64,000 nt of DNA from IMG/VR virus record IMGVR_UViG_3300027896_005002, positions 310,001 to 374,000 of that record, one strand, 5' to 3'. The translations under genes and the position numbers were made by a program. A model generated the notes under the pieces. The model was not told the origin of the DNA. It searched no databases and saw only the letters and a program-made list of their open reading frames with translations. How positions within the stretch are numbered: the first letter of the stretch is position 1; each line of letters starts with the position of its first letter. Shown here piece after piece: positions 441 to 61,151 of this stretch.

Positions 441-2411
441 TTAGTCCACCATTGCCCAAAATTCATCTTCTGATATCATTTTAATTCCAAGTGTTTGTGC
501 CTTTGCTATCTTATTGCTATTGGATTTTATAGCCACAAGAAAATTCAAATCCTTATTCACTCGACTTATTGTTCCTCCATGAGCCTGTACCAATTCATAC
601 CATTCTTCTCGTTTATATGGCTTATTGGTCTTTGGATTTACCTTTGAAAAAGCACCAGTAACCTGAAATGATTTTCCTTGTAATTTATTGGATTCAGTTT
701 TTACAGCTTGAGCTTTCCTAATCTTAATTCCACTTGCCATCAATTTTTCAATAAGTGGTTGTCGTTGTTCCAGTCCTTCAACGATTTCTTTCGCTCTTGA
801 TGAACCAATTCCAGAAATCTTGGCTAAATCATCAACTGTAACCTCTTCCATTAATGTTCCTAAATCATATTCATCAGCTATCAATTCAGCCATAGTTTCA
901 CCAAGAGAAGGAATTGCCAAAGCACATAAAAAAGTTACAAGATCCATTTCTTTACATCTATCCAATCCATCGGTAATTTTCTTTGCTGATTTTTCTCCCA
1001 TTCGATCTAAACCAGCGATATTATTCGCCGTAAGAATAAAGAAATCTGCAGGATCCTTAATAATATTCTTATCAAACAATTGTTGAATTGTACTTTCACC
1101 CAAACTATCCATACCCATCCGCTTTTTAAGTACATCAACAAAATGCCTTATTTTTCGAAATTCTTTTCCTTCACATTCATTACTTGTGCATATGAGACTT
1201 ACACCTTCGGAACCATCATCCTTTTTTACCTTAGTAACCGGTCCATGACACATCGGACATTCGGTAGGAATTTTATACGGCTTACCAGCAGACTGTATAA
1301 CCTCCGTAACTTTTGGAATTATTTCACCTGCTTTAATCACCAATATTGTATCACCAATACCAACCTTCAATCTTTCAATTTCATCGAAATTATGAAGCGA
1401 TGCAGCTTTTACCATCGATCCATCAATATTCACAGGTTCAATTACTGCATTTGGTGTTATAACTCCTGTTCGACCAACTGTTAAAATAATATCTCTAAGA
1501 GTAGTTGCGACGCCTCTTGCATCAAATTTAAAGGCAATTTGTGCTTTTGGGTCACCACCAGGATGAAGTCCAAGATCTTTTTGTTTTTGAATACTATTAA
1601 GTTTTATCACCAAACCATCAATATTATATGGCAATTTTTCTCTATCTGATGTCGTATATTGTTCTCGAACTCTGATGACTTCCTGAGGGGAAATTAATTT
1701 ATAATTAGCAGTTACCATTTTTAAAGTATGTGACAAATAATCCATTTTTTCTGTTTCAAAACTAAATGTCACATCATCCGAAACTATATCATAAACTACA
1801 ATACAAAGCATCTCACAACCTTCGCCATCAAACCTTTTACAAATACCACTTGCCGCATTTCTAGGATTTGCATATTTTTTATCAGTGGTTTGTAATGCGT
1901 TGATTGTTTCAAAATCCTTCTTTAATAAAATAATTTCACCACGAACACTAGCCTTTATCTTCTCAGGAATATCCTTCTGAACATATTTCATTCTCAAAAC
2001 ATTAATGGTAATATCTTCACCGGTCCGACCATCACCGCGAGTTAATCCCTGAACTAATTTACCATTATCATAAATTAACTCCACTGACAATCCATCAAAT
2101 TTATCCTCGGTAACACAAACCCTTCCAACAACACCTGTCCTTTTACACCAATCATTAAATTCGGGAACTGACATCGCATTTTGAAGGGAAAACATTTTCA
2201 TCAAATGAGGAGCTTTTTGCCAACCGGAATCTTTTGATGTAGGAGCACCGGTTTCTAATAATACTTGACTATTTGAATCTAACTGTCTTAATCTTTCCAT
2301 TAAAGCATCAAAGGCCGCATCTGAAATCCTCGGTTGTTTATTATAATAAAGATATCGATGCAGCCTAATATCGCTTTCTAATCTGGCAATCTCTGGTTTG
2401 TTATTTTTCAT
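441..2411 (-). CDS. ligA: NAD-dependent DNA ligase
   Basis: Domain Ia YLYY...ISDAAFD, adenylation motif EDKFDG, LTRGDG, NPRNAASG, OB fold VGRTG, C4 zinc finger, HhH repeats, C-terminal BRCT-like domain; GGAGG RBS. Confidence 0.97.
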   Translation of the reverse strand: MKNNKPEIARLESDIRLHRYLYYNKQPRISDAAFDALMERLRQLDSNSQVLLETGAPTSKDSGWQKAPHLMKMFSLQNAMSVPEFNDWCKRTGVVGRVCVTEDKFDGLSVELIYDNGKLVQGLTRGDGRTGEDITINVLRMKYVQKDIPEKIKASVRGEIILLKKDFETINALQTTDKKYANPRNAASGICKRFDGEGCEMLCIVVYDIVSDDVTFSFETEKMDYLSHTLKMVTANYKLISPQEVIRVREQYTTSDREKLPYNIDGLVIKLNSIQKQKDLGLHPGGDPKAQIAFKFDARGVATTLRDIILTVGRTGVITPNAVIEPVNIDGSMVKAASLHNFDEIERLKVGIGDTILVIKAGEIIPKVTEVIQSAGKPYKIPTECPMCHGPVTKVKKDDGSEGVSLICTSNECEGKEFRKIRHFVDVLKKRMGMDSLGESTIQQLFDKNIIKDPADFFILTANNIAGLDRMGEKSAKKITDGLDRCKEMDLVTFLCALAIPSLGETMAELIADEYDLGTLMEEVTVDDLAKISGIGSSRAKEIVEGLEQRQPLIEKLMASGIKIRKAQAVKTESNKLQGKSFQVTGAFSKVNPKTNKPYKREEWYELVQAHGGTISRVNKDLNFLVAIKSNSNKIAKAQTLGIKMISEDEFWAMVD

Positions 2412-2478
2412 ATTTCCTCCTATATAATATAGTCATCAAAAAAGGCGTAGATTTTGGGTTTAAATGTTAAAACGAAGA

Positions 2479-2640
2479 TTATTTTTGAGGCTTTTCTTTG
2501 ACATTTTTCTTTGGATAAAAAGGATTATATTTAGCATTTATTTTGCCAATAATAATGCCGATCGCTAATCCTACTGCAAAAGTAAAACTAAAAAGAACTA
2601 ACATAAAATTTGAATGTACTGGTACAATCATATCTTGCAT
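2479..2640 (-). CDS. small single-pass membrane protein
   Basis: Hydrophobic stretch FMLVLFSFTFAVGLAIGIII and basic tail; start moved to ATG 2640 because the track start overlaps a tRNA. Confidence 0.5.
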   Translation of the reverse strand: MQDMIVPVHSNFMLVLFSFTFAVGLAIGIIIGKINAKYNPFYPKKNVKEKPQK

Positions 2641-2712
2641 ATTACTATATTCTATTTTAAAGACAATGAATAACCAGTCTTCTTTAACATCAACTTTCAA
2701 ACTAGAAAAGAG

Positions 2713-2779
2713 AGACGACAACAGGAATTGAACCTGCGTAGGCAGTTTTGCAGACTGCCAACCACTCGGACACGCCGTC
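2713..2779 (-). tRNA. tRNA-Cys(GCA), truncated D-arm, possibly a pseudogene
   Basis: Acceptor GACGGCG/TGTCGTC, U73, anticodon arm GCAGT-CTGCAAA-ACTGC, T arm GCAGG-TTCAATT-CCTGT; 3' strand of D stem missing; no encoded CCA. Confidence 0.75.
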
Positions 2780-2790
2780 TAAAATGAAGA

Positions 2791-3021
2791 CTAACTGAAG
2801 AACTTTCTTTCCTGTATCGTCAATCTAGAAATACCCTTATAATGACGCCTTGGATTGCCACAACAATACTGTGAACATCGTTTAGTAGTATTTCTCAAAT
2901 ATCTTGCTGCAATCTCTCGTTGTTTTCTAACATCTACAGAATAATAAAAATTTGACACTCTTTTACGACTCTTCTTAACACCAACAAGAAAATGATCCCT
3001 CTTGTTTTGAGGATGCGGCAT
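2791..3021 (-). CDS. small basic Cys-containing phage protein
   Basis: ATG 3021 with AAGGAG RBS; motif RNTTKRCSQYCCGNPRR...LTIQERK. Confidence 0.7.
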   Translation of the reverse strand: MPHPQNKRDHFLVGVKKSRKRVSNFYYSVDVRKQREIAARYLRNTTKRCSQYCCGNPRRHYKGISRLTIQERKFFS

Positions 3022-3084
3022 AATGACTCCTTTTGTTAGCGCCACTAAGTGCGCGTTCGTTTGGAAGCCATCATATCCTCCTTC

Positions 3085-3702
3085 TTATAAAAGATCACTA
3101 TAACTCAAATTTTTATTCTCATTACACAATTTCTTCAATCGATTTAACCACTGAAAAGTCTTTACTTTAAACATAAAAGGATGTTGTTGTTTGTGCTGAC
3201 TCTTCATCTTACATACTACACCTTCAAATGTAATTCCAGCTAATTGGTTTGTACGTATTTGATTCTCAACCTCATGATTGAAATTACCTTTATGCACAAG
3301 CTTCGGTATCCCGATATGACCATAAAGATCAATAAATTCATCTGGATTTATTATTCCACTCTTAAAAGGATTAACATCTATAAGAACAATATTATGAGGT
3401 TCTTCTATATGAAATCCGGCAAAACTACTACCTCCATAAAATTCAAAAAATGCTACTACTCTATTATATCTTTGTTTCTCAAAAACTTTATTCATCTCTT
3501 CTTCATATTTCTCTTTTATAAGATCTTGCGCATCTATAATATAATCTTGATCTGTCCCAAGCAATCGTCTTCGACTACCAAATTTCCAAAAACCCTTCTT
3601 TCTTTCCCATTCAGCTCGAATATTTGATCCATCTAACTTATCAAAAGCATAAACATAAGATCCATATCTAAGAGTAGATGTTATTGAAATATACTGTTTC
3701 AT
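3085..3702 (-). CDS. ATP-dependent RNA ligase-like nucleotidyltransferase (adenylation domain only)
   Basis: Motifs I KLDGSN, III FFEFYG, IIIa VLIDV, IV FEGVVCK, V FKVK; no OB domain. Confidence 0.8.
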   Translation of the reverse strand: MKQYISITSTLRYGSYVYAFDKLDGSNIRAEWERKKGFWKFGSRRRLLGTDQDYIIDAQDLIKEKYEEEMNKVFEKQRYNRVVAFFEFYGGSSFAGFHIEEPHNIVLIDVNPFKSGIINPDEFIDLYGHIGIPKLVHKGNFNHEVENQIRTNQLAGITFEGVVCKMKSQHKQQHPFMFKVKTFQWLNRLKKLCNENKNLSYSDLL

Positions 3703-3825
3703 ACTCTTTTTCTTATTGATGGTCTTAAAGGATGTTTTTCTAACTCATCGCCTATAGTTTCATACTCTTTTTCTTATTGATGGTCTTAAAGGATGTTTTT
3801 CTAACTCATCGCCTATAGTTTCATA
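3696..3825. repeat. exact 61-bp tandem duplication (2 copies plus 8 bp)
   Basis: Unit starting GTTTCATACTCTTTTTC at 3696 and 3757, with GTTTCATA again at 3818. Confidence 0.95.
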
Positions 3826-3975
3826 ATAACAATCATCACACATAAAACCATTTAGTACTTTCTATTTTCCAGTAACCATTGATATCGGTACTTGACACTT
3901 GCAACACTTATCACCATCTATAGTTAAAGTACCTTTATCCATCATTTCCAAAAATTCTTGTAATGTATATGACAT
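3760..3975 (-). pseudogene. CxxC...CxxC zinc-ribbon protein interrupted by an in-frame TAG
   Basis: MSYTLQEFLEMMDKGTLTIDGDKCCKCQVPISMVTGK*KVLNGFMCDDCYYETIGDELEKHPLRPSIRKRV; TAG at 3862-3864 lies between the two Cys pairs. Confidence 0.7.
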
Positions 3976-3976
3976 T

Positions 3977-4321
3977 TTACCCTAACTCGTTTGGTACAAC
4001 GCAACAATATTTTTGTCGTTCTTCTTTAAATTTTTCCCATTGCTGATTTAAATATACAAGTTTTGACTTATCATCAATTTTTGGCACTAATTCAATTTCT
4101 TTTAATGGTATTACAGTACCATATTGTTTCATATTAGGTTGTAAATTTCCAATATTATAATGATATTCTATATCTAAAAAATTACCACCAAATTTATGTC
4201 TACTAATTATGAATCCTATATCAATTTTATTATAAATACCTATTTTGGCCCAACGAGCATAAATAAAATAAAGACAACCATCTTTACAATCATCTATTTC
4301 TATCATTGATAAACATATCAT
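3977..4321 (-). CDS. hypothetical protein
   Basis: 114-aa ORF on the operon strand, filling the gap below tRNA-Cys. Confidence 0.7.
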   Translation of the reverse strand: MICLSMIEIDDCKDGCLYFIYARWAKIGIYNKIDIGFIISRHKFGGNFLDIEYHYNIGNLQPNMKQYGTVIPLKEIELVPKIDDKSKLVYLNQQWEKFKEERQKYCCVVPNELG

Positions 4322-4344
4322 ATTTGTCTCAATTACAACTTAAA

Positions 4345-4435
4345 TGGAGACGGCGGTGGGATTTGAACCCACGTTGGAGCTTTCGCTCAGCAGTTTTGCA
4401 GACTGCGATCTTCGACCAACTCGATCCACGCCGTC
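4345..4435 (-). tRNA. tRNA-Cys(GCA) with a long variable arm
   Basis: GACGGCG/CGCCGTC acceptor, U73-CCA, D stem GATC/GATC, anticodon loop CTGCAAA, extra arm GAGC-GAAA-GCTC, T arm GTGGG-TTCAAAT-CCCAC. Confidence 0.92.
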
Positions 4436-4436
4436 A

Positions 4437-5654
4437 TTAAGTATTTTCTCTAATAAAACGCCTAACCTGAGTATGAGACACATTCCATAAATTAGCAAGT
4501 TTTGAAATAGATCCCCATTTTTTTAAATCTATATTTTGTAAGTCTTGTAATCTTTGATTATGAATCTTAAATGATTTCACTTTATTCAATACAATAATAA
4601 GTTTTTCTATTTGCTTTTTTGTTTTTCGTTTTATTTGTTTTGTTGTTGTTATACTTTCTTTCTTTTGATTTATGTTTTCTTTTTTTCGATTATTTAATAG
4701 TAATAATTTGTTTTGCAATTTTTCATTAAAACTACAAACAGTTCTTTTTTTAAGTACTTCTAAAACTTCATTCAATACACTTTTAGACTCATTACAAACA
4801 ACTTTCCATGGTAATCTTATTACTTCAACACCCAAATTATTAAGCAATTCATCTTTTCGTTTATCAATTTCTTTTTGATGATTATATCTATAATGTTGTG
4901 ATCCATCAATTTCAATTGCTACATTTAAATTTTGAAAAAAGAAATCAATTCTATAAAAAGACACTCTATACTCACGAATATAATCTTTATTTAATTTATA
5001 ACCTGATGTTTGTAAAAAATTATTGAAAAATTTTTCTGCAAATGACTCGTGAAATTGTCGTTTGCACATTCTACCTTCTTTATGACTTCTTTTAATAACA
5101 TCAGACATATTTCTTTTTTCACAATTTTTTAATACATGATTTAAATCTCTCTTTGTAAAACCATTTTGTTGCCTAATAATTTTTATCGGCACATTATCAT
5201 AATAAAGTGATTTTATTTTTTTAATATTTTCAGTTGTTAAATGACATTTTTCAATATGCATTACAAAAATATTTGCAGGAAATGAATGATTACACTTATC
5301 ACAAATATACAATCCATTTGTGGATTTATATTGTGTAAAGTCGACTTTTTTATATTTTCTTATTCGTCTTAATCTTCTTGGACCTAAACCATTGCATGAA
5401 TTATAATGTATCTTATATACTTTACTGCTTATAAAATTTCCACACTTAGAACATAAAATTTCTTTAAGTTTTTTTATTTTTGGACCATTACAATACTTTA
5501 CATGATTTGACCAACTTGATTTATCTTTAAACGATGTATTACACTTATCACATTTATAATCTTTATTCTGTTTATGTCTCCATCTAAAATGATTTGCAAA
5601 TAAAGATGATGAACTAAATGGCAATTGACATTCATCACAAAAATAATTTTCCAT
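4437..5654 (-). CDS. C2H2/C2HC zinc-finger + DUF559/Vsr-like endonuclease (putative free-standing homing endonuclease)
   Basis: Four CxxC...H fingers; nuclease motif EYRVSFYRIDFF...IEIDGSQH...DKRKD; C-terminal HTH-like segment; inserted between two tRNAs. Confidence 0.8.
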   Translation of the reverse strand: MENYFCDECQLPFSSSSLFANHFRWRHKQNKDYKCDKCNTSFKDKSSWSNHVKYCNGPKIKKLKEILCSKCGNFISSKVYKIHYNSCNGLGPRRLRRIRKYKKVDFTQYKSTNGLYICDKCNHSFPANIFVMHIEKCHLTTENIKKIKSLYYDNVPIKIIRQQNGFTKRDLNHVLKNCEKRNMSDVIKRSHKEGRMCKRQFHESFAEKFFNNFLQTSGYKLNKDYIREYRVSFYRIDFFFQNLNVAIEIDGSQHYRYNHQKEIDKRKDELLNNLGVEVIRLPWKVVCNESKSVLNEVLEVLKKRTVCSFNEKLQNKLLLLNNRKKENINQKKESITTTKQIKRKTKKQIEKLIIVLNKVKSFKIHNQRLQDLQNIDLKKWGSISKLANLWNVSHTQVRRFIRENT

Positions 5655-5669
5655 TATAACTCCTTTAAA

Positions 5670-5761
5670 CGGAAGATGAGAGAATTGAACTCCCAGTCCA
5701 ATTTTTATTTGGACAACTGTTTAGCAAACAGCCCCGGCGAACCATTATCCGGCTATCTTCC
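5670..5761 (-). tRNA. tRNA-Ser(GCT)
   Basis: GGAAGAT/ATCTTCC acceptor, G73, D stem CCGG/CCGG, loop TTGCTAA, long variable arm GTCCAA/TTGGAC, T loop TTCAATT; A at position 8; no encoded CCA. Confidence 0.9.
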
Positions 5762-5835
5762 AATTATAGAAGTTATAAAGACATAATCAATTGTATTGCA
5801 ATTAATTTAACCTCTCTAAGTTTACATTTATATAA

Positions 5836-6110
5836 TGGCTGGCTCGGAGGGTTTCGAACCCCCAACCTACTGGTTACACTTATCTATATATTTCTATATA
5901 GCGTGGACTTTCTCTTCACCATTTTCTATTTCTAGAATTTAGGTGCACCGTGTAAAGTCTCTACACATAAGAACTTTTAGTTCTCTTGCTCGGGATTGCC
6001 ATAGATTTCTCTTTAGGTTTCCCCGACTTAGCGGCGAGTTCATCTAAATATTTCTATTTAGAGCTGCGTTTGACCACAGCCAGTCGCTCCGCCTATTGAG
6101 CTACGAGCCA
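5836..6110 (-). tRNA. tRNA-Asn(GTT), intron-containing (exons 6076-6110 and 5836-5876)
   Basis: Joined exons give TGGCTCG-TA-GCTC-AATAGGCG-GAGC-G-ACTGG-CTGT^TAA-CCAGT-AGGTT-GGGGG-TTCGAAA-CCCTC-CGAGCCA-G-CCA; G73 fits Asn. Confidence 0.92.
5877..6075 (-). ncRNA. group I self-splicing intron (199 nt, no ORF) at tRNA position 35/36
   Basis: P1: exon GCUGU pairs with IGS GCAGC, U.G at the splice site; P AAGUCGGGGAAA, Q GCAAUCCCGAGC, R GUAGAGACUUUAC, S GAAGAGAAAGUCC; P9 hairpin; terminal omega-G. Confidence 0.93.
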
Positions 6111-6121
6111 GTAATTTGTAC

Positions 6122-6134
6122 AATTTCAAAGAAC
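6122..6134 (-). promoter_or_regulatory. boxA-like antitermination element
   Basis: GTTCTTTGAAATT just upstream of tRNA-Asn; resembles rrn boxA. Confidence 0.55.
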
Positions 6135-6152
6135 ATAACTTCGAAAATAATA

Positions 6153-6228
6153 TGGTGGGCGCACTCCGAGTCGAACGGAGATAAGAAGATTTTCAGTCTT
6201 CCGCCTTGTCCGCGTTGGCAATACACCC
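6153..6228 (-). tRNA. tRNA-Phe(GAA)
   Basis: GGGTGTA/TGCGCCC acceptor, A73-CCA, anticodon arm GAAGA-CTGAAAA-TCTTC, T arm CTCCG-TTCGACT-CGGAG; 76 nt. Confidence 0.93.
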
Positions 6229-6230
6229 AT

Positions 6231-6243
6231 ATTTTCAAAGATC
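6231..6243 (-). promoter_or_regulatory. boxA-like antitermination element
   Basis: GATCTTTGAAAAT between the terminator and tRNA-Phe. Confidence 0.55.
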
Positions 6244-6258
6244 ATTTATACTCAAAAT

Positions 6259-6297
6259 AAAAAAGGCTCCATCAACATTTGTTGGTGGAGCCTTTTT
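6259..6297 (-). terminator. intrinsic terminator of the putative attenuator (symmetrical, may be bidirectional)
   Basis: GGCTCCACCAAC-AAAT-GTTGATGGAGCC then TTTTTT on the minus strand; one C-A mismatch. Confidence 0.85.
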
Positions 6298-6320
6298 ATA
6301 AATAATCGCCGATTATTTAT

Positions 6321-6407
6321 TTAAGCAAACTCCACCAATTCGTTTTTGCTATTAAAGCAAAAACTACTAAACATGTTATTATTACATGTTTTGGTGTAGT
6401 TTTTCAT
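6321..6407 (-). CDS. putative attenuator leader peptide MKNYTKTCNNNMFSSFCFNSKNELVEFA
   Basis: 28 codons plus TAA, AAGAGG RBS 5 nt upstream; codons 24-26 (TTGGTGGAG) are complementary to the terminator 5' arm. Confidence 0.8.
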   Translation of the reverse strand: MKNYTKTCNNNMFSSFCFNSKNELVEFA

Positions 6408-6427
6408 TATTTCCTCTTAAAATTAAA

Positions 6428-6600
6428 GTTGGCTGGCGACCCATATTCAACATCGACTTGTGATCTTCATTTTCGCCAGCTAAACCTGAAGAATAAATTC
6501 GATGTTATTAAATGGTTTTATTATAAGGCGCCCTACTTTGGGCGCCATTTTCCTCAGCTTATACCCTACGACTTAGTAGGTTGATTCTTTCGAATCTCTC
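6428..6600 (-). ncRNA. candidate structured RNA (pseudoknot plus three hairpins), family not recognised
   Basis: GC-rich complementary segments in an AT-rich intergenic region; GAAA tetraloop on the minus strand. Confidence 0.5.
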
Positions 6601-7005
6601 AAAATTTACGCAATTATAAATATAATATAAAAAAACTATTTTGTACAATTATTTGTAGGAATATAAATCCAACATAATAAAACAAAGCTGACTACTTCTA
6701 TTGTTGGTAATAAATGTTCCATAGTTTATATAATCACTTATTTATCGAAGAATGGCCTATAATCAATCTTCGAATCACTTTCTATAATTTTCCAATCACT
6801 TCCTCTTTTTTTAGAAGTTTTTTCAATCTTGCCATTATTCTTTAAAGTAATAAGGTTTGACCAGGTTAATCCATAATCAGCAAATGCCATTGGATTTTGT
6901 TCTTTTTATAAAAGAATTTATCAAAAATCAAATAAGAGAGATAATCTATGACTCCCAAGAGAATAAAAGAAGTTTTCATTTTTTATCCTTTGGTTTGTGG
7001 TAAAA

Positions 7006-7083
7006 TCAGCGGGGGTGGCTTCGAACCACCGCACTCCTCCATGTTTTAGAGGTGCTCTGATAATCCAGCTGAGCTACCCGCCG
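7006..7083 (-). tRNA. tRNA-like gene with non-canonical anticodon loop (AAAACAT; nominal AAC), isotype undetermined
   Basis: CGGCGGG/CCCGCTG acceptor, A73, D stem GCTC/GAGC, stem CCTCT/GGAGG, T arm GGTGG-TTCGAAG-CCACC; A32/A33 instead of Y32/U33; no CCA. Confidence 0.75.
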
Positions 7084-7097
7084 TTATATTTTTATAT

Positions 7098-7268
7098 TCA
7101 ATAAAAAGTCGAAGATTGGTCTTTAATCTCAATTTTAGCTAATCTTCTAGCTCTTTTCTTTGACTTTCCATTGTGGTATTCTTTTTCCCACCAATTTACA
7201 TAGCCTTTTGGAGGATGATTATCGGGCATATTTGCAGGATGCTGAGGTTGTAGTCCATATTTTTTCAT
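7098..7268 (-). CDS. small basic hypothetical protein (56 aa, not in ORF track)
   Basis: MKKYGLQPQHPANMPDNHPPKGYVNWWEKEYHNGKSKKRARRLAKIEIKDQSSTFY; ATGA overlap with the upstream stop. Confidence 0.7.
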   Translation of the reverse strand: MKKYGLQPQHPANMPDNHPPKGYVNWWEKEYHNGKSKKRARRLAKIEIKDQSSTFY

Positions 7269-7537
7269 TTCATATCAATACGATTAAGAAATTTCATTGT
7301 ATTAGATCGAGGAGAATTTCGTCGTTCGTCAAAATTAAAAATTTGAGTTCTATCAGGACCTTCACCTTTATAAATAGTACAATGAACACTATTATATAAT
7401 TTAAGTAAATCATGTCTTACTTGTGTACGAAATTCTTTTATAGCAGTCACGTCATTTTCAAATTCTCGAACTGCATATTGAGATGGTGCAGTATTTTGAT
7501 CATTCATTTTTTCAATAACTAAAAAATATCTTATCAT
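7265..7537 (-). CDS. hypothetical protein
   Basis: 90-aa ORF tightly packed in the operon. Confidence 0.7.
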   Translation of the reverse strand: MIRYFLVIEKMNDQNTAPSQYAVREFENDVTAIKEFRTQVRHDLLKLYNSVHCTIYKGEGPDRTQIFNFDERRNSPRSNTMKFLNRIDMK

Positions 7538-7538
7538 A

Positions 7539-8339
7539 TCAACGATCCTTTTTTAAAAATGACTTTAAAGACTCATTGATATTATTCTCACAATCAACCC
7601 AATTACAATATTTACAATGATCACCTCTATTTTTCTCAAATTTATTATTTTCAATTGCATCAAACATCTTTTCTACTTCATTTGATACAATCATATAATC
7701 TTCATCTTTTACTACAATGTCTATAATCTTATTCTCTTTTTTAGATGGATGTACAAATCTTACTTTCTCTTCCACAAGACCATACCTTTTGTACAAGGCC
7801 CAACTATAAATTAATCCTTGCATTCTATATTTCTCTACATCATGTTTTCCTGTTTTCCAATCTAAAATATTGAGACATCCATGTGACTCAATAACTAAAT
7901 CCATGAACCCATGCATATTTATTTCAAATCTTTTATTATTATATGGTAATAAAAATTCTAATTCAATTCCTTTTTTGCCGTCATTAAAAAGATAAACTTC
8001 ATGTAACCAATCATGTTCTTTGGCCATTGCTACCCAGTTTTTGATCATTGTAAATCCAGTAGCTTTACTATATTTTAATTCTAATTGTTCTGCTTGTTGT
8101 TGTTTTGTTTCAATATCAAAAAATTTGGGCCAATTCTCAAATAATGTTTTAGTATTGCTAAATCTACCGGTATTATAAAATTTTTGAAGTAATTTATGAA
8201 GAGCCTGACCAAAAACTAGATGTACACTTGGTAATCTAATAACTTGACGTTTGTCTATTTTGTCTAGTTTGAAGGCCCAAGGACAGGTAGAAAAATTATT
8301 GATTGTAGAAGCAGATAAGTTAAAATGAAGTTTTTTCAT
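7539..8339 (-). CDS. PD-(D/E)XK nuclease, RecB/AddB/Cas4-like
   Basis: LSAS...CP, FGQALH, GFMDLV, ILDWKTGK, QGLIY, C-terminal CxxC...C. Confidence 0.88.
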   Translation of the reverse strand: MKKLHFNLSASTINNFSTCPWAFKLDKIDKRQVIRLPSVHLVFGQALHKLLQKFYNTGRFSNTKTLFENWPKFFDIETKQQQAEQLELKYSKATGFTMIKNWVAMAKEHDWLHEVYLFNDGKKGIELEFLLPYNNKRFEINMHGFMDLVIESHGCLNILDWKTGKHDVEKYRMQGLIYSWALYKRYGLVEEKVRFVHPSKKENKIIDIVVKDEDYMIVSNEVEKMFDAIENNKFEKNRGDHCKYCNWVDCENNINESLKSFLKKDR

Positions 8340-9616
8340 TTTTGTTTTGACTGTACATATTCAGTCAAATAACTTATTGCTTTTTCATGTTTTGCAGCGG
8401 TCTCACTAGCTTTATAGTTAACTTCTTTTTTCAGATTTGCAATAATTGACTTTTTCTCTTCTTCAGACTTTTGTAATTTTGTAGTTCTGTCTTGAATAAA
8501 AGCATCAACATCTTCTTTAGATGCAGTAATATTTCTTATATCACAAATATGATCTAAAAATATTTTTGATTCAAGAGTCTTTTCTACACGACGTTTTGTT
8601 TGAGCATAAAAAGTACTTTTTGCGTCTTTAAATTTTTTCAAATATTCTTCTTCACTTGTTGACATACGATACAGAAATTGATTCCATTCACCATCTAATT
8701 CTCGACCAATCATAACCTCGGGTAAAGGCTCAATTTCCGAACTACTAATACATGCAGCTATTATTCCAGATTCAAAATTATCCTGATCAATTTTTTCATA
8801 ATCTTTTATCAATTTATTTTTAATAGTAGCTTTGTACTCATCAATAGATTGTGAATTTGCAGTAGCAAGTTCTTCAATTGATTTTTTAATAGTAGCTTCT
8901 TTTTTATGAATTGTAGTTGTAAAATCCGCAAATTTGCCATTAAGATCTTTGTTATGATATTCTTGAGGAAATTGAACTTTAATTATACCACTAACACCTA
9001 TTTTCATTTGTAGTAATTGTTCTTCAAATCCAGGGATAAATTTTGTTTGACCTATGACGTATCTAAAATTTTTAGATGCACCGCCTTGGAATAATTTTCC
9101 ATCAATTCGTCCTTCATAGTCCATTGTTATGACATCATCAGTTTTTAAATTATATGAATCATCGACTACTGTATATGTTGTATCTTTACTTTGAATAGCG
9201 CTAACTTGTTGACTAACCATTTGATCAGTGATTTCAGTAACTTTCTTAGTAAAATTCACTTTGTCAATATCAAATGATAATACTTTTGGTTTCAAAAACA
9301 CAGTTGCTTGAATTGCTAAAGGTACTTTATCATCAAATTGTCCAAGGACTTCAAAATCATATGCGTCAACAACAGGTAATTGTTTTTCTTCAATAGCTTT
9401 TTGATAAAGAATTGTAAAAATATTTTGATATAGTTTAAATCTGTCAAGACGTTTTTCTGCTTCAGCTCGAGGCGCATGACCTTTTCTAAAACCAGGAATT
9501 TCAATATTGGATTTTACTTTGTCGTATTCTTGATCCATTAACTCTTTTACTACAGTTGCATCTGCAATAAATTTTAATTTATGCGGCGTTGCTTGTTTTG
9601 TCAGAGTTACTTGCAT
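8336..9616 (-). CDS. tig: trigger factor (ribosome-associated chaperone/PPIase)
   Basis: Signature IPGFRKGHAP, FKBP domain (DYEGRIDG..FQGG, FIPGFEEQL, VQFPQEYH), helical C-domain; ATG 9616 with GGAGG RBS. Confidence 0.93.
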   Translation of the reverse strand: MQVTLTKQATPHKLKFIADATVVKELMDQEYDKVKSNIEIPGFRKGHAPRAEAEKRLDRFKLYQNIFTILYQKAIEEKQLPVVDAYDFEVLGQFDDKVPLAIQATVFLKPKVLSFDIDKVNFTKKVTEITDQMVSQQVSAIQSKDTTYTVVDDSYNLKTDDVITMDYEGRIDGKLFQGGASKNFRYVIGQTKFIPGFEEQLLQMKIGVSGIIKVQFPQEYHNKDLNGKFADFTTTIHKKEATIKKSIEELATANSQSIDEYKATIKNKLIKDYEKIDQDNFESGIIAACISSSEIEPLPEVMIGRELDGEWNQFLYRMSTSEEEYLKKFKDAKSTFYAQTKRRVEKTLESKIFLDHICDIRNITASKEDVDAFIQDRTTKLQKSEEEKKSIIANLKKEVNYKASETAAKHEKAISYLTEYVQSKQK

Positions 9617-9764
9617 TTTTTCCTCCACATAAGAAATCAAATTTTGCTAATTTGTCATTTTTGTTATTATTGTTAACTGTTGGCTTCGTATAATTTACAT
9701 TTTTATCTTTTTTACACTTTTTAGCTATTTCAAACAATTCTGGAATTATAACAACTTTTTTCAT
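9579..9764 (-). CDS. hypothetical protein
   Basis: 61-aa ORF with ATGA coupling to the upstream gene. Confidence 0.5.
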   Translation of the reverse strand: MKKVVIIPELFEIAKKCKKDKNVNYTKPTVNNNNKNDKLAKFDFLCGGKNASNSDKTSNAA

Positions 9765-60256: not shown

Positions 60257-60392
60257 GAATGTCTCTTTTCATAATTGTAAGATATTATGATTTTATAAAA
60301 CGATTATCGATATTGAGAGGATATAAAGACATTCTCCCTTAATAGGTCGATGAATGTCTTTGAGGGATAAAAGAAGCAAGAATTATAAATTT

Positions 60393-61151
60393 TTAATCGT
60401 ACATCTCACCTTCTCGATGTTGTGCTAAAGATTTAAGATCACTAATAAAATAACTGTCAACTTTTGAAATTTCAGGACCCCAGTCACCAGATCTTAGTAC
60501 TGCTTTTTTATGTTCTTTTGTTGGAATAACCATAAGAGTCATACCGTCAGGATCTACACCACCATGTGGTCCCTCACCAACAGAAAATAATTGTTTGGGA
60601 TATTTCTTCTTCAACTTAATAATTCTATTTACCATTCTTTTAGGACTAGTATGTGACATATCAAAATCAAAAGTTTTTAAACCTTTTACTAATTTTTGAT
60701 CAGCATCTTCTAATTCTTTATTTTCTTTTGTTAAAATACTAACAACAGTATTTTTACTATATTTCTTATATGAAAGTATAATTTCATTTCCATCTTTATT
60801 CCATGTTCTGACGCCAATATGGTAATCAGTTTTAGGTAATTTCTTACTTTTTCCATAATGTTCATTAAATTGTTTAAATAATTCTTTATATTTTCTTTTA
60901 GATTTATCTGGAAACGATTCACGTATTGCATAATCTCCATCACCTTCAGGCTCATTTTGCAATAATGATTTAATAGATTCAGAATGTTCTTGCGTGTCTT
61001 CTCCAGAAACTTCACGTTTTGGTCTCGCAGTTAACCGTCTTTTACTTTTCCTATGTCTTTTTAAATAAGCCCTTTGTTCATCTAAAGACAAATCATCCCA
61101 TTTTCTTGCTTCTTTAACAAATTCTGATTGAATTATAGCCAAATGTTTCAT
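60393..61151 (-). CDS. tagged hypothetical protein (putative head-internal protein)
   Basis: MKHLAIIQSEFVKEARKWDDLSLDEQRAYLKRHRKSKRRLT; AAGGAG RBS. Confidence 0.85.
   Translation of the reverse strand: MKHLAIIQSEFVKEARKWDDLSLDEQRAYLKRHRKSKRRLTARPKREVSGEDTQEHSESIKSLLQNEPEGDGDYAIRESFPDKSKRKYKELFKQFNEHYGKSKKLPKTDYHIGVRTWNKDGNEIILSYKKYSKNTVVSILTKENKELEDADQKLVKGLKTFDFDMSHTSPKRMVNRIIKLKKKYPKQLFSVGEGPHGGVDPDGMTLMVIPTKEHKKAVLRSGDWGPEISKVDSYFISDLKSLAQHREGEMYD

Follow-up and report, generated by a model that had tools for sequence, protein, structure and literature searches.

Probable leader-peptide attenuators ahead of the tRNA modules of an uncultivated jumbo phage

The window analysed here, 64,000 nucleotides in all, comprises bases 310,001-374,000 of one 416,029-bp virus contig (31% G+C) from a freshwater metagenome assembly, the genome of an uncultivated jumbo phage of 416 kb. 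On its minus strand a short open reading frame (ORF) and a terminator precede a group of tRNA genes; we call this leader with its putative attenuator the W unit, and three other units of the same genome (G000) are named P, K and M. Many phages carry tRNA genes, and for fifty years opinion on what these are for has been divided between codon compensation and counter-defence; to our knowledge, little has been established about how they are regulated. The elements of the W unit and the tRNA genes that follow it are these:

6619..6648, minus: promoter-like TTGTAC-N18-TATATT from a motif search, with the -35 element at 6648-6643 and the -10 element at 6624-6619
6421..6612, minus: structured 5' untranslated region (UTR) of 192 nt between promoter and leader (minimum free energy, MFE, -54.2 kcal/mol; z -3.56)
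6418-6413, minus: Shine-Dalgarno (SD) sequence AAGAGG, 5 nt ahead of the ATG, read from the sequence
6321..6407, minus: leader ORF, 28 codons from the ATG at 6407 and then TAA (6323-6321), defined by sequence and frame conservation
6392..6402, minus: segment 1, partner of segment 2 in MFE folds (AAACU.CACCA with UGGUG.AGUUU)
6348..6386, minus: control codons 8-20, of which 12 of 13 are Cys, Asn, Phe or Ser(AGY)
6342..6364, minus: hairpin B, 9 bp within the leader ORF (fold; compensatory changes)
6327..6338, minus: segment 2, the antiterminator 5' arm, codons 24-27 (fold, covariation)
6298..6320, minus: spacer hairpin separating segments 2 and 3 (fold)
6281..6293, minus: segment 3, the terminator 5' arm, common to antiterminator and terminator (fold, covariation)
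6265..6276, minus: segment 4, the terminator 3' arm, with the A of a C-A mismatch at 6272 (stem energy)
6254..6264, minus: U-tract (TTTTTTATTTT), with the U6 run at 6264-6259
6153..6228, minus: tRNA-Phe(GAA), the first gene under the predicted control, ~25 nt past the U-tract (tRNA gene search)
5836..6110, minus: tRNA-Asn(GTT), split by a group I intron at 6075-5877 (Rfam RF00028; exon boundaries read from the sequence)
5669..5762, minus: tRNA-Ser(GCT) (tRNA gene search)
4345..4435, minus: tRNA-Cys(GCA), 91 nt, with a long variable arm (tRNA gene search)
2712..2779, minus: second tRNA-Cys(GCA), 68 nt, with a shortened D arm (tRNA gene search)

The AAGAGG sequence resembles the ribosome-binding sites (RBS) of adjacent genes in both spacing and sequence. 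The core of the leader peptide is CNNNMFSSFCFNS, and all three of its Ser codons are AGY. Segment 2 precedes the stop codon by 4-15 nt, inside the footprint of a terminating ribosome, and 59 nt separate the stop codon from the U-tract. The terminator consists of a 12-bp stem with one mismatch (C-A, positions 6285/6272) and a U6 run, ~25 nt ahead of tRNA-Phe. An earlier note on this DNA had described the SD, the ORF, codons 8-20, the hairpin, the mismatch and the U6 run, and its coordinates and sequence statements all proved correct, as did its list of downstream tRNAs on the same strand (Phe, Asn, Ser(GCT) and two Cys), the tRNA-Asn being recovered as an intron-split gene. The 199-nt group I intron sits in the anticodon loop (RF00028, 55.2 bits against a gathering score of 50), and because it splits the gene, ARAGORN fails to call this tRNA.

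Both conformers proposed for the leader RNA fold as claimed. The terminator stem alone amounts to -16.5 kcal/mol; for an RNA that stops short of arm 4, the MFE structure is a 12-bp helix of 6338-6327 with 6293-6282, the antiterminator, and the 2:3 domain reaches -23.6 kcal/mol without arm 4. Within this helix, TTGGTGGAG (6338-6330) is perfectly complementary to CTCCACCAA (6290-6282), the 9-bp match noticed earlier, which G-U pairs extend to 12 bp. The whole 176-nt leader folds at -55.3 kcal/mol (z = -8.3), and in the full-length MFE structure 6402-6392 are paired with 6337-6327, enclosing two hairpins, so that the predicted folds give the W unit the complete 1:2, 2:3 and 3:4 layout of classical attenuators. 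This last pairing contradicts the assertion that nothing sequesters the antiterminator arm: according to the folds, in an RNA that is not being translated the arm can be sequestered by segment 1. The related idea that absence of translation leaves the switch ON lacks support and is doubtful, since the 1:2 pairing exists. The 1:2 helix belongs to the MFE fold and is mostly kept in relatives, yet before arm 4 is synthesized the 2:3 pairing beats it (-40.1 vs -31.7 kcal/mol).

The simplest account of such a locus would be an ordinary intrinsic terminator of an upstream unit that follows a chance ORF or an unrelated small gene, with the tRNAs expressed by other means. Phage tRNA regions commonly hold small ORFs and terminators, and AT-rich DNA furnishes many Asn and Phe codons. 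The four anticodons decode a set of 8 codons, to which 15 of the 27 sense codons of the W leader belong, compared with 14.7% in the long ORFs of the genome (binomial P 9.5e-7). When the leader was shuffled 200,000 times with its dinucleotides preserved, 21 shuffles reached 15 cognate codons; the enrichment thus holds against sequences of equal composition. Windows of 13 codons with at least 12 from this set occur at six loci in the 416-kb genome when all frames on both strands are counted. That five other loci reach 12 of 13 by chance speaks for a fortuitous ORF; none of the five is adjacent to Phe, Asn, Ser or Cys tRNAs, and most are antisense to genes.

There is neither the space nor a conserved promoter between terminator and tRNA. 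A candidate in this interval was rejected: the spacer measures ~25 nt, the only motif readable in it is a poor TTGATG-N19-TATAAA that is mutated in a close relative, and this is the least conserved part of the locus in that relative. The close relative, represented in contigs of two public runs, has tRNAs, terminator and leader that are almost unchanged, with leader and terminator as conserved as the tRNAs; the flanking spacers diverge, in that there are six substitutions in the 14 nt after the U-tract and the Phe-Asn spacer has been replaced. The divergence between U-tract and tRNA argues against a conserved promoter there. Upstream of the leader, by contrast with what a plain terminator would predict, stands a dedicated promoter-like site: TTGTAC-N18-TATATT occurs just three times in the 416-kb genome, twice upstream of the W and K leaders, and in relatives G002 and G007 it is found ~45 nt ahead of the leader ATG.

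The design recurs. A scan of the other tRNA clusters of the genome yielded three further units, one ahead of each main cluster:

G000 60,369-60,434, plus: P leader, 21 codons, core RQTQPQQPRQPR (cluster scan)
G000 90,710-90,570, minus: K leader, 46 codons, rich in Leu, Ser(TCN), Lys, His, Gly, Glu and Tyr
G000 76,890-76,810, minus: M leader, 26 codons, core VVVKSMRITISTA (cluster scan)

The four units have unrelated sequences and one architecture, comprising an SD and ATG, a U6-U8 terminator and a predicted 1:2 alternative, and each has a 10-13-bp complement to the terminator 5' arm at the end of its ORF. The P module begins with a 110-aa ORF and continues with Pro(TGG), Gln(TTG), Pro(CGG), Gln(CTG), Arg(TCG) and Arg(GCG), and the P leader has at least one exact cognate codon for each of these six tRNAs. 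The K module holds Lys, Lys, His, Leu, Leu, Ser(TGA), Asp, Ser(CGA), Met, Glu, Gly and Tyr; the M module holds Met, Thr, Ala, Ile and Val. Codons cognate to the leader's own module number 15/27 in W, 10/20 in P, 25/45 in K and 9/25 in M, which correspond to enrichments of 3.8x, 7.1x, 1.5x and 2.2x, respectively, and every cell of the 4 x 4 table that pairs a leader with another module is at most 1.2x. In the same order, binomial P values are 9.5e-7, 2.9e-7, 6e-3 and 1.4e-2, and those from leader shuffles are ~1e-4, 4e-4, 1.5e-3 and 1.3e-2. Among 112 terminator-like hairpins across the genome, a leader ORF combined with a strong antiterminator (scored as a short SD/ATG ORF whose end can pair with the 5' arm over 10 bp or more, including no fewer than 5 G-C pairs) accompanies just four, all ahead of tRNAs. 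Neither the W leader nor its 5' UTR has a paralogue in the genome, and the device is not unique to the W cluster: it recurs in modular form in this phage clade.

Homologous units were located in five related IMG/VR contigs by inspection of the regions upstream of tRNAs, and four full sequences are available for the W family (window:6250-6420:-, L035:1106-1272:+, L036:1300-1477:+ and L038:3616-3798:-). In their alignment, the length of every gap within the ORF is divisible by 3, and gaps after the stop codon measure 1-2 nt. Three compensatory double changes preserve the pairing of the terminator. The antiterminator is preserved as well: the U-A pair at 6338-6282 is replaced by C-G in relatives, with G-U intermediates that also keep the helix, and at the three positions where segment 3 has changed, segments 2 and 4 both remain able to pair with it, as predicted if selection acts on a two-state switch. 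Hairpin B has three base pairs with compensatory double changes among homologues, and the RNAalifold consensus of the four includes an 8-bp version of the spacer hairpin with two compensatory pairs. The C-A mismatch is invariant in 4/4 W homologues and the T6 run is conserved too; the CACCA/UGGUG part of the 1:2 pairing is kept in 3/4, and by reading, a bulged version fits the fourth.

Codon content follows tRNA content in both the relatives and the paralogous units, the covariation that the earlier note had proposed to look for. Across the four W homologues 16 of 17 Ser codons are AGY. ACG codons appear solely in the leaders of three relatives (2, 3 and 2 copies) whose module has gained a tRNA-Thr(CGT); the leader of the window is without ACG, and its genome is without tRNA-Thr(CGT). 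In the P family, G001 has AGG in its leader and tRNA-Arg(CCT) in its module, and G003 has a Pro/Gln leader core ahead of a module with Pro and Gln tRNAs only and no Arg tRNAs. G003 has two further units, a His/Met-rich leader (H; core MVHHMIHSH) ahead of tRNA-His and tRNA-Met, and a Tyr/Phe/Lys-rich leader (Y) ahead of Tyr, Lys, Phe and Lys tRNAs; these two leaders have an N-terminal motif in common, which suggests duplication followed by re-programming. Per-unit binomial P values across genomes range from 9e-2 to 3e-11, and in every genome the diagonal of the leader-by-module table is highest. The 2:3 antiterminator is present in all 13 units, and the position of segment 2 relative to the stop codon falls between -16 and +15 nt in 13/13, with 53-66 nt from stop to U-tract; most have a gap of 10-85 nt between the terminator and the first tRNA.

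A plain terminator at the end of an operon was accordingly rejected, given the promoter-like site, the ORF with conserved frame and the covarying antiterminator. A design that occurs four times in the genome and in ~13 units overall, each matching its own tRNAs, with in-frame indels only and with covariation that maintains the antiterminator as well as the terminator, leaves that account a very slim chance of being right.

A second alternative is a genuine 2:3/3:4 switch that is set by something other than a ribosome, such as an RNA-binding protein of phage or host, a small RNA, or T-box-like binding of tRNA, with the ORF incidental. The helices covary on their own, apart from the ORF; the unit of the window has an extra structured 5' UTR of 192 nt; and UGGU in segment 2 of the W family faintly recalls the T-box bulge. 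Nevertheless, searches returned no T-box or other Rfam family, the segment 2 sequences of the other families are unrelated, and an incidental ORF leaves unexplained the frame-preserving indels and SD sites, the narrowly constrained position of the stop codon over segment 2 in 13/13 units, and the codon-anticodon match, which extends to synonymous choice (Ser AGY vs TCN, Thr ACG, Arg AGG). We regard a switch of this kind as unlikely.

Instead, we consider it quite probable that the W unit is a ribosome-mediated (leader-peptide) transcription attenuator gating a phage tRNA module, the reading first offered in the earlier note and one that the comparative evidence strongly supports. It draws on the anatomy of the unit, the mutually exclusive helices and their covariation, the conservation of the ORF frame, and the match of codons to tRNAs in many independent units; from these we infer translation of the leader, stalling, termination and read-through, and a physiological trigger that may be anticodon nucleases, codon demand or starvation. 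Transcription would start from the dedicated promoter, and the 28-codon leader would be translated while it is being made. With an ample supply of charged tRNA-Phe, -Asn, -Ser(AGY) and -Cys, the ribosome would reach the stop codon and cover segment 2, whereupon the 3:4 terminator would form and RNA polymerase would stop ~25 nt ahead of tRNA-Phe. Should any of the four tRNAs be scarce, the ribosome would stall in codons 8-20 and keep segment 1 off segment 2, and the free segment 2 would pair with segment 3, blocking the terminator and allowing the tRNA module to be transcribed. New tRNAs, once processed and charged, would speed translation of the leader and turn the module off, a negative feedback with one loop per module.

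The leaders might also be translated and sense tRNA supply as described while acting mainly through RNA processing or stability, through translational coupling, or through a trans-acting peptide or attenuator RNA. Protein genes do lie past the terminators (the 110-aa ORF after the P unit, the endonuclease in the W module), and the N-terminal motif common to the H and Y leaders of G003 could mean that the peptide has a function; trans-acting leader peptides and attenuator small RNAs are known from Sinorhizobium (PMC7298713; PMC7968998). Such outputs have little prospect of being the principal one, considering that the units end in canonical intrinsic terminators with U6-U8 tracts 10-85 nt ahead of the first tRNA, that the stop-to-U-tract spacing is constant, and that leader peptides of different families share nothing beyond their cognate-codon bias.

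Attenuation by leader peptide may extend to Bacillus phage G, the closest cultured relative by DnaB helicase (30% identity):

JN638751.1 58,381-58,515 (L043:1082-1216): gp86, 44 codons, annotated as hypothetical

This gene is followed by ~61 nt, a terminator, 10 nt, and then tRNA-Cys, Asp, Phe, Tyr, Glu, Thr and Ser(TGA). The control stretch of gp86 contains FEFDTDFTDVFYCEYTF; 21 of its 28 codons are cognate to these seven tRNAs, each of the seven is represented by 2-6 gp86 codons, and the Ser codons of the stretch are TCN. An antiterminator is predicted, and judging from these features gp86 looks like the same device.

Several points weigh against the attenuator model. In gp86, segment 2 precedes the stop codon by 25-40 nt, farther than in the freshwater clade, and the arrangement is not universal, as G005, Lak-A1 and the second cluster of phage G showed no convincing leader ahead of their tRNAs. 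The structured 192-nt 5' UTR precedes the unit of the window only and is unexplained: it is missing from the homologous units of relatives, making it an insert specific to this W unit, and it has no Rfam match and no second copy in the genome or the fetched loci. Because 2:3 is favoured over 1:2 before arm 4 emerges, the untranslated state appears from the folding energies to be thermodynamically ambiguous. For the large modules K, M and Y the enrichment is modest (1.3-2.2x), and module boundaries were drawn by our own choice. The W family comprises four full sequences, three of them close together, such that each co-variation amounts to about one evolutionary contrast. If a phage polymerase does the transcribing, it might fail to respond to intrinsic terminators or work uncoupled from ribosomes, and amino-acid starvation would also lead to read-through, in which case extra tRNA gives no help. 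No RNA sequencing run contains the sequence of the locus.

The class of mechanism is a textbook one. As in the enterobacterial trp, his, pheA, leu, thr and ilv attenuators, the phage units have a short ORF led by an SD, a run of regulatory codons, an intrinsic terminator and four segments predicted to form mutually exclusive 1:2, 2:3 and 3:4 pairings, with a terminating ribosome at the stop codon positioned to mask segment 2. They differ in that the regulated genes are the cognate tRNA genes rather than biosynthetic enzymes or a synthetase, that one leader would monitor four to a dozen tRNAs together, that its codon set is defined by the downstream anticodons down to synonymous choice, and that the device is viral and present in several copies per genome. 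Escherichia coli pheST is preceded by a leader-peptide attenuator (pheM) that reads the supply of charged tRNA-Phe ahead of a gene of the translation apparatus; it controls a synthetase and senses a single amino acid, whereas the W unit would control tRNA genes. Two Rfam families were considered for the W leader and rejected, Phe_leader (RF01859; 20.9 bits against a gathering score of 55) and PyrG_leader (RF02371; 30.7 bits against 65), with both alignments resting mainly on the terminator. T-boxes likewise sense specific tRNAs and choose between terminator and antiterminator in a leader RNA, but they bind uncharged tRNA directly by means of a Stem I specifier and the T-box sequence, whereas the predicted sensor of the phage is a translating ribosome; the T-box model (RF00230) gave no match up to E = 10 in a 0.9-kb search or E = 1 in a 12-kb search.

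Bacterial upstream ORFs (uORFs) whose speed of translation sets downstream transcription furnish a further parallel. One example is whiB7, upregulated after the tRNase VapC5 cleaves tRNA-Ser (PMC10287673), and the mycobacterial polycysteine uORFs (bioRxiv 10.1101/834739) are another; it has been proposed that such uORFs read out tRNA cleavage by toxins. These uORF attenuators control stress or biosynthetic genes, and none controls the genes of the tRNAs that it senses. Phage tRNAs are known to replace host tRNAs depleted by defence nucleases (PMC10264068; PMC11555353), and the former paper mentions no attenuator, leader, terminator or promoter for phage tRNA genes. A full-text literature search that did not cover all journals gave no description of leader-peptide attenuators ahead of tRNA genes in phages or elsewhere, and what is apparently new here is that tRNA genes would be the ones regulated.

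Taken more broadly, the pattern makes it reasonably likely, though with less assurance than for the W unit itself, that huge phages have a modular network for tRNA homeostasis. Each block of tRNAs would be gated by its own attenuator, written in the codons that those tRNAs decode; shortages caused by nucleases, host shut-off or the phage's own codon demand would be sensed anticodon by anticodon and the exact set replenished, and leaders would be re-programmed as tRNAs are gained or lost, and also through duplication of leaders, as the N-terminus common to H and Y suggests. If this is true, the phage treats its tRNA supply as a monitored quantity, which would give direct support to models of replacement on demand. 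Leader-peptide attenuation would be extended to stable RNA genes whose product feeds back on its own sensor, and to multi-amino-acid leaders with codon content that is easily re-programmed. In practice, the codon content of a leader predicts the tRNAs of one transcription unit and can flag those that gene callers miss, such as the intron-split tRNA-Asn. Phage G is cultured and appears to carry such a unit in gp86, which makes the model testable at the bench.

In three relatives the W leader ends with TAG (L035:1200-1202, L036:1406-1408, L038), and a tRNA(CTA) is encoded by the module in L028, L036 and L038. In the genome of the window the leader ends with TAA and no tRNA(CTA) was found, and the frames past the TAG of the relatives are not conserved. 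The pairing of a leader TAG with tRNA(CTA) raises the possibility that the device might also read the supply of suppressor tRNA during stop-codon reassignment. Immediately upstream of the W leader in L036 (1125-1296) is a tRNA-Gln flanked by a 25-nt direct repeat, as if it had been inserted with duplication of its target.

The locus had no blastn match in 50,697 cultured phage records, and exact-pattern searches of IMG/VR for the terminator and for tRNA-Phe found nothing. Synteny was followed through the neighbouring nuclease (64% identical in viral and metagenome contigs), and the tRNA island was absent from these contigs, with no orthologous leader. In bacterial contigs the W-type arm pattern produced 49 matches, which were dismissed as chance occurrences in GC-rich DNA; none had a U-tract, and one (GC 72%) was near a tRNA. 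The 110-aa ORF of the P module was tried as a marker for leaders and rejected, as it stands in other contexts in 12/15 loci.

The entire 5-kb tRNA island (2411-7540) is missing in related contigs, where the order is a PD-(D/E)XK nuclease, one ORF and an NAD-dependent DNA ligase. Between tRNA-Ser and tRNA-Cys (4437-5654, minus) a 405-aa ORF with C2H2-type zinc fingers and a DUF559, or restriction-endonuclease-like, domain resembles a homing endonuclease that has inserted itself into the tRNA module. The intron-split tRNA-Asn recurs in a related phage (L036:2038-2298, 58.6 bits), another relative has an intronless copy, and a second and stronger group I intron (91 bits) is present elsewhere in the genome (G000:C1:69613-69854).

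At 7008-7083 (minus) there is a tRNA-like gene with an enlarged anticodon loop, which default settings miss and relaxed ARAGORN reports with the 4-base anticodon 'aaaa'; tRNAs with the anticodons (cttg) and (cttt) were called in the relatives L014, L029 and L036. Genes of this type may decode quadruplets, act as odd suppressors or have decayed. Also within the island is an RNA-ligase-like ORF (3085-3702, minus), whose match to PF09414 (E = 5.5e-5) falls below the cut-off and suggests a possible role in tRNA repair; a perfect 61-nt tandem duplication (3701-3822, minus) spans its RBS and start codon.

Ahead of the DNA ligase gene a promoter-like motif (ATCTACGC ... GATGACTAT ... TAGG) is conserved in four genomes (window 2422-2460, minus; L003:9090-9200; L004:3310-3385; L006:1760-1825). 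By eye, the motif that precedes the P and M leaders resembles it, and the W and K leaders use TTGTAC-N18-TATATT. On the other side of the island, 8336-9640 (minus) encodes a full-length homologue of trigger factor (Trigger_N, FKBP, Trigger_C), a ribosome-associated chaperone that is unusual in a virus.

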